Assembly (NCBI GenBank): GCA_904063045.1
Contig: CAJFCJ010000033.1
Location: 1 to 64,000, forward strand
From: Dimorphilus gyrociliatus
Taxonomy: Eukaryota; Animalia; Annelida
Reading direction: 5' to 3'
Length of the DNA: 64,000 nucleotides
Shown: one piece after another, positions 14,701-23,700 of the stretch
Position numbering within the stretch: the first letter of the stretch is position 1
Layout of the letters: each line of letters starts with the position of its first letter
Notes under the pieces: generated by a model
Told to the model about the DNA's origin: nothing
Databases searched by the model: none
Seen by the model: the letters and a program-made list of their open reading frames with translations, nothing else
Position numbers and translations under genes: made by a program

Positions 14701-17700
14701 AATTTTTTATTACACAGTATATAACTATCATATTTCAAAAAAAGGTATTCTAAGCCGAATGATTATGTATTATTCCTAATCTATTTAACTTAATAATTAG
14801 AACAGTAACATACATATATATGTAGTATAAAGTACATAGTACCGTTTATAAAAAAAGTATATATGATTTTCGCCGCTATAATTCTAAAACCTGAAATTTC
14901 TTTGTGTAATATTCTAACAAACAGCCAAAAAACCTTTTGAATGTAAGATATGAAAAAAGATATTTACTTTAAAACAAATGTATTCTCACTTATGACTTTT
15001 TATCAACATTTAAAAGGCAGATATGGTTTTTCACCTTTTATCGAAGTGACAGTTCATATATTTTTGACTATTTTAAAAAACACATAAAAATTGTAAGATG
15101 TTTACTGACTATTTTCTATCAAAAATTCAATATGAAGAGATATTTCAAAAATTGTTTGCTTGTTTTTTTTCAAATTTAATATTGCAAACATTTGTATAGG
15201 CTGATTTGAAGATTCATTTAAGAAACAGGTGAAAAACCATTCCAATGTAAAGTATGTGGTGAACGATTTAATCAAAAGGGTAGTCTGAATAGTCATGAAC
15301 GTATTCATACTGGTAAGTTTGCCATATTAATACATGAATTTGATGGTTTTTTGCCTGTTTGTTATAAATTCTGATTCTTTGTAACTCAGTTAAAGTAGTT
15401 TATATAAATGCTTAATTTCACTAAAACGAACGGGCGAAAAACCATTCGAATGTAAGACGTGCGGAGAGAGATTCACTGTTTCGTCTAATTTAAAGACTCA
15501 CGAACGTGTTCACACTGGTGAGGTTTTATTTAAATTTTGAAAATTCGTAAGGTCTTTCGCTTGTTTCCTTCGTTAGAAGATTCAACCTATTTTTTATAAT
15601 TTGTATAATAAACAGGCGAAAAACCTTTTGAATGTAAGGTGTGCAGTGAAAGATTTACTCGAAAACACCACCTTACTAGTCACGAACGTATTCATACTGG
15701 TGAGTTTTAACGACATTTAAAAAGTAGATATGGTTTTTCACCTTTTTTGAAATGAAAGTTCAAATATTTTTAACAATTTTAAAAATAATCTAAAAGTTGT
15801 AGGATGTTTAATGACTATTTTCTATCCAAATTTCAACATGAAGAGATTTCAAAAATTGTTTGCTTGTCTTTTTTCGAATTTTATAATGCGGACCTTTCTA
15901 TAAACTGAATTGAAAATTCATTTAACAAACAGGTGAAAAACCATTCGAATGTAAAGTATGTGGTGAACGATTTAGTCAAAAAAGCCATCTCAATGTTCAT
16001 GAACGTATTCACACTGGTAAGTTTGCCATATTTATACACGAATTTGATGGTTTTTTACCTTTTTGTTTAGTAAATAATTACCTTCTAGTACTTTATAATT
16101 CTTTTAAAATACCTAATTTCATTGAAACAAACAGGTGAAAAACCATTCCAATGTAAAGTATGTGGTGAACGATTTAATCAAAAAGGCAGTCTGAATATTC
16201 ATGAGCGCATTCATACTGGTAAGTTTGCCGTATTAAAACATGAATTTTGATGGTTTTTTGCCTGTTTGTTTAGTAAATAATCACCTTCTAGTACTTTGTA
16301 ATTCTTTTAAAATACCTAATTTCATTGAAACAAACAGGCGAAAAGCCTTACGAATGTAAGACGTGTGGAGAGAGATTCACTGTATCATCTAGTTTAAAGA
16401 CTCACGAACGTATTCATACTGGTGAGTTTTTTTCGACATTTAAAGCGCAGATATGGTTTTTCATCTCTTTTTTTCTGAAAGTTCAAACCGATTTCTACAA
16501 TTTTAATCGTTCTAAGGAAAAGCGTTCTAAATACAGAATGTATGATTACTATAGAGACATTTTAAAATATTTTTTTCCCATATTTCTCGGATGTAATGTT
16601 AAAGATATCTCTAAAAACCGATTTGAAGAATCATTTAATAAACAGGTGAAAAACCATTCAAATGTAAAATATGTGGTGAACGATTTAGTCAAAAAAGCCA
16701 TCTCAACGCTCATGAACGTATTCACACTGGTAAGTTTGCCATATTTATATAAAGAAATATTTGATAAAACGTACAGTCAGAAAGCGTTTTGATTGCAGTG
16801 TAAGAGAGATTCACTAGTTTAAGACGATGTAAAATCTGGTTTTTCAATGGAAGTAGAGAAACAATTTCCATCTGATGATAGGCATAAAAAGTTATGATTA
16901 TTAAGGGTATTGTGAAAGGTTTTATAAAGTGTATACCTCAACTACCACAAACACATTTACAGTAATAGGTTCTGCATAGGTGTTTCCTGGAGTATTTAAT
17001 TAAAAATTTTTTTTTAGAGCGCAAAATCGTAGAAATGTACTTTTTTAAGGACAGATTTCACGTTAACCAGTGACTGAATTTTTTATCAGGATATTCACAG
17101 TAGACAGATTAGTTTTCACTTACAGTTACTTTCTTAAGATCTAAAAGTTAATGTTTTCCCTTTTACTGTTATATGTTAATATATTAAAGGATAATGTTCA
17201 GTTATAAATGTAATTTCGATATTTTTACTCTTTATTGTCTAAAAGATATTTTCAATTTTTTAGGCGAAAAGCCTTACGCATGTGATTTCTGTGATTCAAG
17301 ATTTATCGACTCTAGTTCTCTTAGAAAGCATATTAGAATTCATACTGATTAGATTTTTTTTTCTTTTAAAATAACTTTGTGTGTGCTAATTATTTTCATA
17401 TTGTCTACTAATTTCGAATCAGCGAAGGATGCTAATTACTTAATATTTATTTTTGGCAAAAATATTTAATTAGGTTTTTTTAGAAATTATTTTTTATCTG
17501 TAGTCATAGATTTCACAAAAAGTATAAGAAAATTCACACTGGTTACACTTAATTTTAAAACTAGAATGTACTCTTATGGGCTTTGGTTGTCAAAGTTATT
17601 ATGATTTCGTGTGTGGTCATTTGTTGTATGAATGATAGCTTATCTGTCATCTGGGCGAAAGTTTACCTAATGTAATTCTTTTAATTAAAAAACCCAACTG

Positions 17701-20700: not shown

Positions 20701-23700
20701 TTAAAAAGTAGATATGGTTTTTCACCTTTTTTGAAATGAAAGTTCAAATATTTTTAACAATTTTAAAAATAATCTAAAAGTTGTAGGATGTTTAATGACT
20801 ATTTTCTATCCAAATTTCAACATGAAGAGATTTCAAAAATTGTTTGCTTGTCTTTTTTCGAATTTTATAATGCGGACCTTTCTATAAACTGAATTGAAAA
20901 TTCATTTAACAAACAGGTGAAAAACCATTCGAATGTAAAGTATGTGGTGAACGATTTAGTCAAAAAGGCAGTCTGAATAGTCATGAACGAATTCATACTG
21001 GTAAGTTTGCCAAATATATATAAGTAAATTTGATGGTTTTTTACCTTTTTGTTTAGTAAATAATTACTTTCTAGTCCTTTGTAATTTATACAAGATACTT
21101 AATTTCATTGAAACAAACAGGTGAAAAACCATTCCAATGTAAAGTATGTGGTGAACGATTTAATCAAAAAGGCATTCTGAATAATCATGAACGAATTCAT
21201 ACTGGTAAGTTTGCCATATTAATACATGAATTTGATGGTTTTTTGCCTGTTTGTTTAGTAAATAATTAAATTCTAGTACTTTGTAATTCTTTTAAAATAC
21301 CTTATTTCATTGAAACAAACAGGTGAAAAACCATTCCAATGTAAAGTATGTGGTGAACGATTTAATCGAAAAGACAATCTCAATATTCATGAACGCATTC
21401 ATACTGGTAAGTTTGCCATATTAATACATGAATTTGAGGGTTTTTTGCCTGTTTGTTTAGTAAATAATCACCTTCTAGTACTTTGTAATTCTTTTAAAAT
21501 ACCTAATTTCATTGAAACAAACAGGTGAAAAACCTTACGAATGTAAGACGTGTGGAGAGAGATTCACTGTATCATCTAGTTTAAAGACTCACGAACGTAT
21601 TCATACTGGTGAGTTTTTTTCGACATTTAAAGCGCAGATATAATTTTTTATCTCTTTTATTCTAAAAGTTCGAACCGATTTCTACAATTTTAGTATCGTG
21701 CCAACGAAAAACGTTCTAAATACAGAATGTGTGATTACTTTAGAGATATTTTAAAATATTTTTTTCCCATTTTTCTCGGATGTAATGTTAAAGATATCTC
21801 TAAAAACCGATTTTAAAATTAATTTAACAAACAGGTGAAAAACCATTCGAATGTAAAATATGTGGTGAACGATTTAATCAAAAAGGCAATCTGAATTGTC
21901 ATGAACGTATTCACTCTGGTAAGTTTGCCAAATATTTATAAGTAAATTTGATGGTTTTTTGCCTGTTTGTTTAGTAAATAATTACCTTCTAGTCCTTTGT
22001 TATTTATACAAGATACTTAATTTAATTGAAACAAATAGGCGTAAAACCTTTTGAATGTAAGGTGTGCGATGAAAGATTTTCCCATAAATCCTAACTTATC
22101 TCATTCATGAACGACGTGTTCTTCCGTCTGAAACGCCTTTTGACATATTTCAAGAAACCATTTGAATGTTATTTGACCAAAACAAAAATAGAACAGTCTC
22201 GTGAATTTTTCACGCAAATGATTTGTGTACAGACTGTAATACTTTGTGTAACATTACTAATTGGATAAAGAGGCAACACATATTGAATAATGAAGTTAAG
22301 CTATTATTCTGACTTTGGTTAAATAATTTTCATTTTCGGTAAACGAAAAAAAAGAGAAAAGAAATTTTAAGAAATGTTTATATTGTATTGCGTATTCTGA
22401 TACTTTTATAGGATGTTCTATTTATTCACTAAAATTTTTTTTATAATTCACTTATGTTGAAAAGGAGAACAACCGTTTGAGTGTAGAATTTGCGGTGAAA
22501 GGTTTAAGCAACTCTCGGGCTTAAAATATCATATTAACAGTATCCACCCTGGTGAGTTTAATTTAAGAAATACTTTTTTCGGTTGAATACCGATTTTAAA
22601 GTTTAACATTATATTTGGGTCTGTTTTTAATAATTTGTTTTAGCTCTTTATAATTTAAGTAGTATGCTTTTTCTTTTTGATTACGAGTTTTTAGGCAATA
22701 ACGTTTTAGGCTTTAATAGGCTTTGGTAAATGGTACAGGAAGATACATTTAAAAACTATATTATTTGTTCTTCGAACCCTATGTTTTGTAATTTTAACTG
22801 TTTTATGTTGCATACCCCTTTTGGTTAGCAAAGATTATTAAGGTTTTGGGGGGGTGGGTTTTGAGAGAGAAATAATTGTTTCCTAATTTAATAGAGACGT
22901 TGACAAAAAAATTTTATCATGTATATTATATTATATATTTTTTATTGTTGAAAGTTTTTCTTTTTTCTGTCGGTTTGGATACTAACCTAATAGGGTTTTT
23001 GAATGTTTTTTATTTACAGTCAAAAGTCCTTTTTCTTGTGAACGTTGCCCAGCTGTTTTTCAAAATGATGCGGATTTGAAAAAACATGTTAAAATTCATT
23101 TTGGTAAGAATCTAAATATTTTCCGTAAGGAAAAAAAAGCGAACGATTTCCTTCTCTGCTCCTTGCTAGCTCCTTTGTCCACCCTATATGTCATACCCTC
23201 TCAATTTAAGTTAACTCTACAATTAATTACTTGGAAGCGTAAAAGTAACATTAATAGTGTTACGTTGTGTTCCTGTAAATTTATATATACATATACATAC
23301 ACATATACATATATATATATATATATATGTATGTATGTATATATGTATGCATATTTTTATGTATATATGTATGTATGTATGTGTGCATGTGTGCATGTTT
23401 GTGTGTATGCATGCGTGCATGTGCTTTTTTTGTAAGTGAGAACCTTTACTTTCATTTTGAATGATTGTTGAGGCTCTTTTTTTTGGAGGCTTTCACGATG
23501 GCAGACATATTCACGATTAACTGTTAATTCATTGTTAATTGAAAAGATATAATGACGAGATGGACCAAAAAAATATGTCTAAAACAACAGGTGACAAGCC
23601 ATATGTTTGCAAAGTTTGTGGTGAAAGGTTTCCTCAGAGTTCAATGTTAAAGACTCACGAACGACTTCATCTGGGTAAGTGTAATATGTTGAACATACTG

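Follow-up and report, generated by a model that had tools for sequence, protein, structure and literature searches.

The window analysed here is a stretch of 64,000 nucleotides from the annelid Dimorphilus gyrociliatus (assembly GCA_904063045.1, contig CAJFCJ010000033.1, positions 1 to 64,000 of the forward strand). It is AT-rich with a G+C content of about 30%, and a motif scan showed about 30 C2H2 zinc-finger motifs on the plus strand from about 12.5 to 26 kb. Nine fingers of this locus share one framework and differ in the amino acids of their helices only at the DNA contact positions. This raises the question of whether the contact residues change faster than neutral sequence does, and by which process. 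The locus was found to be split into single-finger exons that are exchanged between units and alternatively spliced, and the nine fingers are probably a young subfamily, homogenised by exchange, whose contact residues are diversifying faster than neutral within this split-exon, multi-isoform locus.

Finger exons and helix variation

The finger exons carry one finger plus linker per 84-nt exon, flanked by AG and GT and with a symmetric 1-1 phase. The glycine codon of the linker is split across the splice, with one exon ending in HT plus G and the next starting with G plus EKP, by which a TGEKP-type linker is restored. Fifteen intact finger exons are arranged in two duplicated blocks, A (A1 to A7) and B (B1 to B8), and the nine variable fingers of the QK/RK type are a subset of these (Table 1). 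Contigs from four runs (X1 to X4, from two studies) were aligned to positions 15940-21939 (6,000 nt, with A1 to A3 outside), and the linker junction was seen in contigs which continue from an exon end into GAAAAACC. The C-x2-C-x12-H-x3-H spacing and the conserved F and L core were present in all nine variable and all six interleaved fingers. All nine variable fingers also passed the Pfam zf-C2H2 (PF00096) gathering cut-off of 25.2 bits, with scores of 26.0-35.8 bits each.

The framework common to A1, A4, A5, A7, B1, B4, B5, B6 and B8 is (G)EKPFxCK(V/I)CGERF(N/S). Inspection of the nine 84-nt exons confirmed this framework and the helices as the first-pass annotation had given them, together with its statement that K(+1), L(+4) and N(+5) are fixed and -1, +2, +3 and +6 vary. 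The three fixed residues are invariant as protein, each with a synonymous variant only, and amino-acid variation in the helix was found exclusively at the four contact positions. Overall, 18 of the 84 columns are variable among the nine fingers. The A1 (15229) and B1 (20212) exons differ at 8 of 84 nt, 7 of which are within codons -1 to +6, while their downstream introns differ at 3 of 121 nt, exactly as annotated earlier. Likewise, the reported recurrence of helix cassettes at non-equivalent positions was reproduced: the QKGSLNS helix is present in both A1 and B4 with two synonymous differences, and the RKD helix in both B1 and B6 with one nonsynonymous difference.

The interleaved fingers are of two conserved types, TVSS (A2, A6, B2 and B7) and TRKHH (A3 and B3). 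Their helices differ between the blocks at 2 of 21 nt for A2/B2 and at none of 21 nt for either A3/B3 or A6/B7. Between positional homologues across the blocks, QK-type helices differ at 21 of 84 nt, other finger types at 2 of 63 nt and introns at 4-8%; pairwise Fisher tests on such homologues overstate significance because conversion copies several differences together, which are then not independent. Zinc ligands, linker and core residues are intact in every variable finger. In addition, R(-1) and D(+2) switch jointly, from Q(-1)/G(+2) to R(-1)/D(+2). An Arg-Asp pair at -1/+2 is canonical in Zif268-type fingers, and the joint change suggests a real switch of triplet preference.

Substitution rates at contact codons

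Minimal mutations per codon were counted across the nine fingers, with positions -1, +2, +3 and +6 as the contact class and the remaining 23 codons as the other class. Contact codons showed 12 nonsynonymous mutations and 1 synonymous mutation (9.7 nonsynonymous and 2.3 synonymous sites), and the other 23 codons showed 5 and 7 (55.8 and 13.2 sites). The four contact codons hold 12 of the 17 nonsynonymous mutations (McDonald-Kreitman-like Fisher test of contact against other codons, p=0.011). With the pooled silent rate of 0.52 per site as reference, contact codons had an omega of approximately 2.4 (p=0.042 in a one-sided binomial test). At the other 23 codons it was approximately 0.17, with purifying selection acting on the remainder of the finger. 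The silent rate was alike in the two classes, with 0.44 per site in contact codons and 0.53 in other codons. A mutational hotspot in the helix was ruled out on account of these equal rates, which also argue against helices much older than their flanks.

The intron comparison was made on six units whose introns are homologous over their full length. Contact sites showed 0.83 mutations per site compared to 0.30 in unpaired intron, a ratio of 2.75 (p=0.010). In the six units, contact sites had a diversity of 0.28, helix non-contact sites of 0.06, the framework of 0.055 and the whole intron of 0.10. A sliding 12-nt diversity window failed to single out the helix, as two intron windows were equally diverse. 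These intron windows stem from one two-haplotype split, and helix columns reach four states.

The unpaired part of the intron is distinguished here because the short introns after A1, A5, B4 and B5 (e.g. 16219-16337 and 21205-21322) each fold into a stem of about 22 bp. One arm of this stem is an element about 30 nt past the donor, and the other is made up of the following 3' splice site together with 12-14 nt at the start of the exon behind it. Folding z-scores of the intron stems were -3.2 to -5.0, and the stem arms had a diversity of 0.03-0.06 compared to 0.13 in the remaining intron. The intron is a biased neutral yardstick: since the stem is conserved, part of the contrast between conserved introns and variable helices reflects intron constraint. 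Contact sites still showed an excess when only unpaired intron or silent sites served as yardstick.

The first-pass annotation had proposed diversifying selection at the contact positions and a comparison with silent and intron rates as its check. The contact rate was above both (by about 2.4 times, p=0.04, and by about 2.75 times over unpaired intron, p=0.01). Diversifying selection is therefore favoured, at a strength that is suggestive in a small sample.

Duplication and exchange between units

Block A (15209-16765) and block B (20192-21952) are tandem copies with an identity of 92-95%. They align colinearly in two registers, 15209-16359 with 20192-21344 at 94.8% and 15914-16765 with 21101-21952 at 92.0%, which shows that block B has one extra unit of 202 nt. 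This unit consists of the 84-nt exon and an intron of about 118 nt, and is present in 3.2 copies in block B compared to 2.2 in block A.

A 379-nt tract (15604-15982) is identical to 20588-20966 in blocks which otherwise differ by 5% (P~1e-7). It stops just before the A4/B4 helix, and the next 131 nt contain 22 differences, 13 of them intronic; the A4/B4 event swapped the helix together with its whole next intron. The B1 and B6 exons are identical at 83 of 84 nt, but the introns upstream of the two exons are unrelated, and so are the second halves of the introns downstream. The four-gamete test failed for 50 of 153 informative site pairs. Unequal crossover and gene conversion between finger units are real, as shown by the 379-nt tract, the B1/B6 identity and the difference in copy number. 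Furthermore, QKSH helices are confined to block A (A4 and A7) and RKD helices to block B (B1 and B6), which suggests that units within a block exchanged sequence once the duplication had taken place.

Gene conversion limited to the helix, as claimed in the earlier annotation, was upheld only in so far as units do exchange sequence. The visible footprint of the A1/B1 event is 29 nt (15274-15302). Its flanks, which are the 5' part of the exon and about 50 nt at the start of the intron, do not differ among the likely donors and are hence uninformative, so that a tract of up to ~140 nt would look no different. Conversion confined to the helix is not needed to explain A1/B1, and the A4/B4 swap (22 differences in 131 nt) included the intron.

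An assembly artefact, or alleles placed in tandem, was ruled out by a 3516-nt contig of run X1, which behaves as genomic DNA; the contig covers 16720-20235 and spans A7, the spacer and B1. The block A letters have an X1 contig of their own, which also speaks against an artefact. The A2 acceptor base was also present in an X1 contig that was cross-aligned to B2 (20415 A>G).

Expression and splicing

Contigs of X2 to X4 showed exact single-exon coverage running into the start of the next exon, GT..AG joints and little or no intergenic depth, and are called RNA-like here. A5 was skipped in one RNA-like contig, with a joint from A4 to A6. In other contigs A5 was joined to A6 or to B2 (16218 to 20417). 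The joint from A7 (16728/9) to 16798/9 puts a stop two codons after A7. Further joints were 17209 to 17264, 18291 to 18570 and 18653 to 20917, and overhanging contig ends gave joints from 12977 to 18570, from 13240 to both 20417 and 20600, and from 18653 to 23020. These ends place uniquely in the window, on exons at 12949, 13212 and 23020. RNA-like depth was lower in block A than in block B.

The isoform joints differ in their finger-exon content, as seen in short contigs. Blocks A and B are in one transcription unit with extensive exon skipping. The long-range joints, which are in frame and bypass entire blocks of finger exons, make the finger exons at 12-26 kb a single transcription unit in which many finger combinations are possible. 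Overall, the finger exons at about 12-26 kb on the plus strand belong to a single C2H2 zinc-finger locus that is expressed as multiple isoforms.

No alternative letters were reported at the helix codons of A4 to B8 in the contigs of the four runs, where contigs drop rare variants and the samples are perhaps from one laboratory culture. The sole contig differences listed were block A letters cross-aligned to B2-B3. Separately, a 1532-nt RNA-like contig covers 16799-17209 and 17264-18290 and then continues at 18570, crossing stops and an ATG at 18228 (a possible second gene start). Read-through could account for this contig, as could a long untranslated region containing introns or the merging of overlapping transcripts during assembly.

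Proposed explanation and its rivals

In the explanation that we favour, a finger-exon block of about 1.5 kb has been duplicated in tandem, with the 202-nt exon plus intron unit tandemly repeated within each block. Unequal crossover and ectopic gene conversion keep frameworks and introns alike, and whole exons are at times copied. The contact positions -1, +2, +3 and +6 of one young subfamily have changed faster than silent sites, which would shift the preferred DNA triplet. All remaining finger positions are kept by purifying selection. The symmetry of the exons makes it possible to skip or combine them in frame, and the variable fingers may in this way feed isoforms with different binding sites. 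The exon anatomy, the expression and splicing, the exchange between units and the excess rate at contact sites are established by the data, and we infer positive selection as the cause of the contact-site excess and altered DNA specificity as the effect of the helix changes. An arms race with transposons, the targeting of recombination or plain functional divergence of newly arisen fingers could be the driver.

Several points weigh against this explanation. The sample is small, with nine fingers and four contact codons, and the test for omega>1 gave a p value of 0.04. Block A appears partly decayed, with the A2 acceptor lost, a stop after A7 and lower RNA depth, so that some of the block A changes could reflect relaxed constraint. 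A Sawyer-like run test for recombination was not significant on six units (p=0.10), nor was a test like the pairwise homoplasy index (PHI) test (p=0.47). Finally, three runs are taken as RNA on the strength of their spliced contigs and patchy coverage, as X2 is recorded as '?' and X3 and X4 as 'DNA?'.

A further step, which we regard as possible though doubtful, is that the locus is a Dscam-like, splice-combinatorial DNA-binding repertoire that generates diversity for a transcription factor, in which dozens of symmetric single-finger exons, some of them with fast-diversifying contact residues, are mixed in frame by skipping and the intron hairpins formed with the next 3' splice site steer exon choice. 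If this is true, diversification of the contact residues would act on interchangeable cassettes and not on a fixed array.

The preferred reading, diversification faster than neutral in a homogenised subfamily, has to be set against three rivals. Relaxed constraint alone, in which the specificity residues of redundant post-duplication fingers drift (omega ~1) and only fold residues remain constrained, is unlikely. The borderline excess over the synonymous rate (p=0.042) would fit such drift, and so would the dead exon A2, the premature stop after A7 and the lower RNA depth of block A, as well as the decayed finger exons which flank both blocks. However, two independent yardsticks give a contact rate of 2.4-2.75 times neutral, and R(-1) and D(+2) change jointly. 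No zinc ligand, linker or core residue was lost in any variable finger, and in block B, which is well expressed, the variable fingers are just as diverse as in block A.

A lower probability still is given to old cassettes in young flanks, by which the QKG, QKSH and RKD helices would be old and under purifying selection, and conversion would have homogenised only frameworks and introns. The three helix types do differ at the silent L(+4) codon (CTG or CTC), A1 and B4 share one helix with two silent differences, and the TVSS and TRKHH fingers are conserved. An older helix would nevertheless be expected to be richer in silent variation, and silent variation in helix and contact codons equals that of the framework (0.44 and 0.53 per site). 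Moreover, diversity at helix non-contact sites is at the intron level, and the five amino-acid changes within the QKG type are all at +3 and +6.

A Pfam scan of the plus-strand open frames between 4.7 and 12.4 kb, a range that takes in the probable N-terminal exon, showed no match to PR/SET, KRAB or SSXRD, although short split exons could escape it; the earlier statement that no PR/SET domain is present was borne out within these frames. A conflict gene like PRDM9 or the KRAB zinc-finger proteins, with an array that tracks a fast-moving target, be it recombination sites, satellites or transposons, and that shows hypervariability among individuals, is very improbable, as it is favoured only by the shared pattern of homogenised repeats, variable contacts and copy-number change (PMC2794550, PMC2604467) and is opposed by the lack of these and other known effector domains in the frames scanned, by the absence of alternative letters at helix codons in the contigs, and by the reduced transposon load of the Dimorphilus gyrociliatus genome, described in a paper without mention of zinc fingers (PMC7854359).

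Features of the locus and neighbouring sequences

The features of the locus are listed in Table 1. Decay or remnants at 14921-14990, 15432-15433, 16799-16830 and 22039-22122 are signs of birth and death of finger exons. The Pfam scan of the probable N-terminal exon (12077-12379) matched no family. A segment of ~42 residues in it (12077-12202) resembles 4834-4959, the N-terminus of an upstream tandem zinc-finger gene, with 33% identity (E=7e-10). A word search with a 42-residue finger gave no candidate among matchable proteins, which were those of 23-73 aa, longer kin being outside its reach.

Table 1. Finger exons, repeat tracts and candidate exons of the zinc-finger locus, in order of position in the window.
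Feature	Positions	Strand	Description	zf-C2H2 score (bits)
Probable N-terminal exon	12077..12379	+	Open frame with probable N-terminal exon of the array gene	
Upstream finger exon	12887..12977	+	Spliced straight to 18570 in RNA-like contig	
Upstream finger exon	13147..13240	+	RNA-like contigs show splicing to B2, B3 and probably B4	
Finger exon remnant	14921..14990	+	TRKHH-like, upstream of A1; the intron after it resembles the intron preceding B4	
A1 finger exon	15229..15312	+	Helix QKGSLNS, variable QK/RK type	31.8
A2 finger exon	15434..15517	+	TVSSNLKT type; acceptor GG, not AG (15432-15433); probably dead	
379-nt tract	15604..15982	+	Identical to 20588-20966; recent conversion tract	
A3 finger exon	15616..15699	+	TRKHHLTS type, identical to B3	26.9
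202-nt tandem array	15917..16359	+	Exon plus intron, 2.2 copies	
A4 finger exon	15933..16016	+	Helix QKSHLNV, variable type	
A5 finger exon	16135..16218	+	Helix QKGSLNI, variable type	
A6 finger exon	16338..16421	+	TVSSSLKT type, conserved; 2 synonymous differences from B7	
A7 finger exon	16646..16729	+	Helix QKSHLNA, variable type	
Exon after A7	16799..17209	+	Spliced to A7 in RNA-like contig; starts with TVSS-type finger remnant (16799-16830)	
Finger exon with stop	17264..17352	+	Ends in IRIHTD and a stop; candidate alternative 3' end of block A	
Divergent finger exon	18570..18653	+	Acceptor for 12977 and 18291, donor to 20917 and 23020	
B1 finger exon	20212..20295	+	Helix RKDTLNI, variable type; 83/84 identical to B6	
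B2 finger exon	20417..20500	+	TVSSNLKA type; expressed as single-exon contig	
B3 finger exon	20600..20683	+	TRKHHLTS type	
202-nt tandem array	20901..21546	+	Exon plus intron, 3.2 copies	
B4 finger exon	20917..21000	+	Helix QKGSLNS, variable type	
B5 finger exon	21121..21204	+	Helix QKGILNN, variable type	
B6 finger exon	21323..21406	+	Helix RKDNLNI, variable type	
B7 finger exon	21525..21608	+	TVSSSLKT type	
B8 finger exon	21835..21918	+	Helix QKGNLNC, variable type	
Ninth B exon	22039..22122	+	Decayed, TRKHH-like; in-frame stop, without GT donor	

Simple-sequence tracts are present inside the locus at 19370-19400 (C/CT-rich), 23250-23440 (TA/CA-type microsatellite) and 25600-25830 (a long CT/GA-type run). 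On the minus strand, 28108-44023 contains large open frames dense in Sushi/CCP repeats, with up to 15 per frame, in addition to a C-type lectin match and weak hormone-receptor-domain matches. This region is a giant extracellular-protein gene adjoining the zinc-finger locus.

Comparison with known systems

A literature search on one-finger-per-exon arrays turned up nothing relevant, and the comparison is therefore made with four known systems. In PRDM9, finger repeats are homogenised and variation is found at the nucleotide-contacting residues (PMC2794550). The likeness to PRDM9 proposed in the first-pass annotation holds for this evolutionary pattern: as in the PRDM9 minisatellite, the C2H2 repeats are tandem and homogenised, vary at the contact residues, exchange fingers and change in repeat number. 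It does not extend to the gene itself, as the PRDM9 unit is 84 bp, intron-less and within one exon, whereas the unit here is 202 nt of exon plus intron. In addition, +2 also varies here, and no PR/SET, KRAB or SSXRD was found.

Recent paralogues with many zinc fingers (poly-ZF), from the lineage-specific KRAB, SCAN and BTB expansions, show positive selection on specificity residues (PMC2604467). The present locus shares with them a recent duplication followed by faster-than-neutral contact change, with the remaining finger under purifying selection. In those expansions whole genes with their fingers in one exon were duplicated, whereas here it was single finger exons and a block within one locus. 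The N-terminal region here is without a known effector domain, and the host is an annelid. The locus is a member of neither the PRDM9 nor the poly-ZF family and shares only their pattern.

Ikaros (IKZF1) has few, old and dissimilar finger exons, and its alternative splicing alters finger content and DNA binding. Both loci have separate finger exons of which alternative splicing sets the finger content, but the exons here are many, near-identical, recently duplicated and single-finger, with hypervariable helices. In lola and fruitless, isoforms swap terminal exon sets with different zinc fingers. One locus gives isoforms with different zinc-finger content in these genes as well, while here it is internal single-finger cassettes that are skipped or joined.

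Rapid change of contact residues in homogenised arrays has mostly been described in vertebrates, in PRDM9 and KRAB zinc fingers. A compact annelid genome now shows this signature in the absence of those effector domains, which suggests that the process is a general property of tandem finger arrays. The intron inside the repeat unit provides natural controls within the locus (intron and silent sites) and ties finger diversification to alternative splicing. Overall, the locus presents an evolutionary pattern known from vertebrate zinc-finger genes in a new architecture that is split by introns and alternatively spliced.

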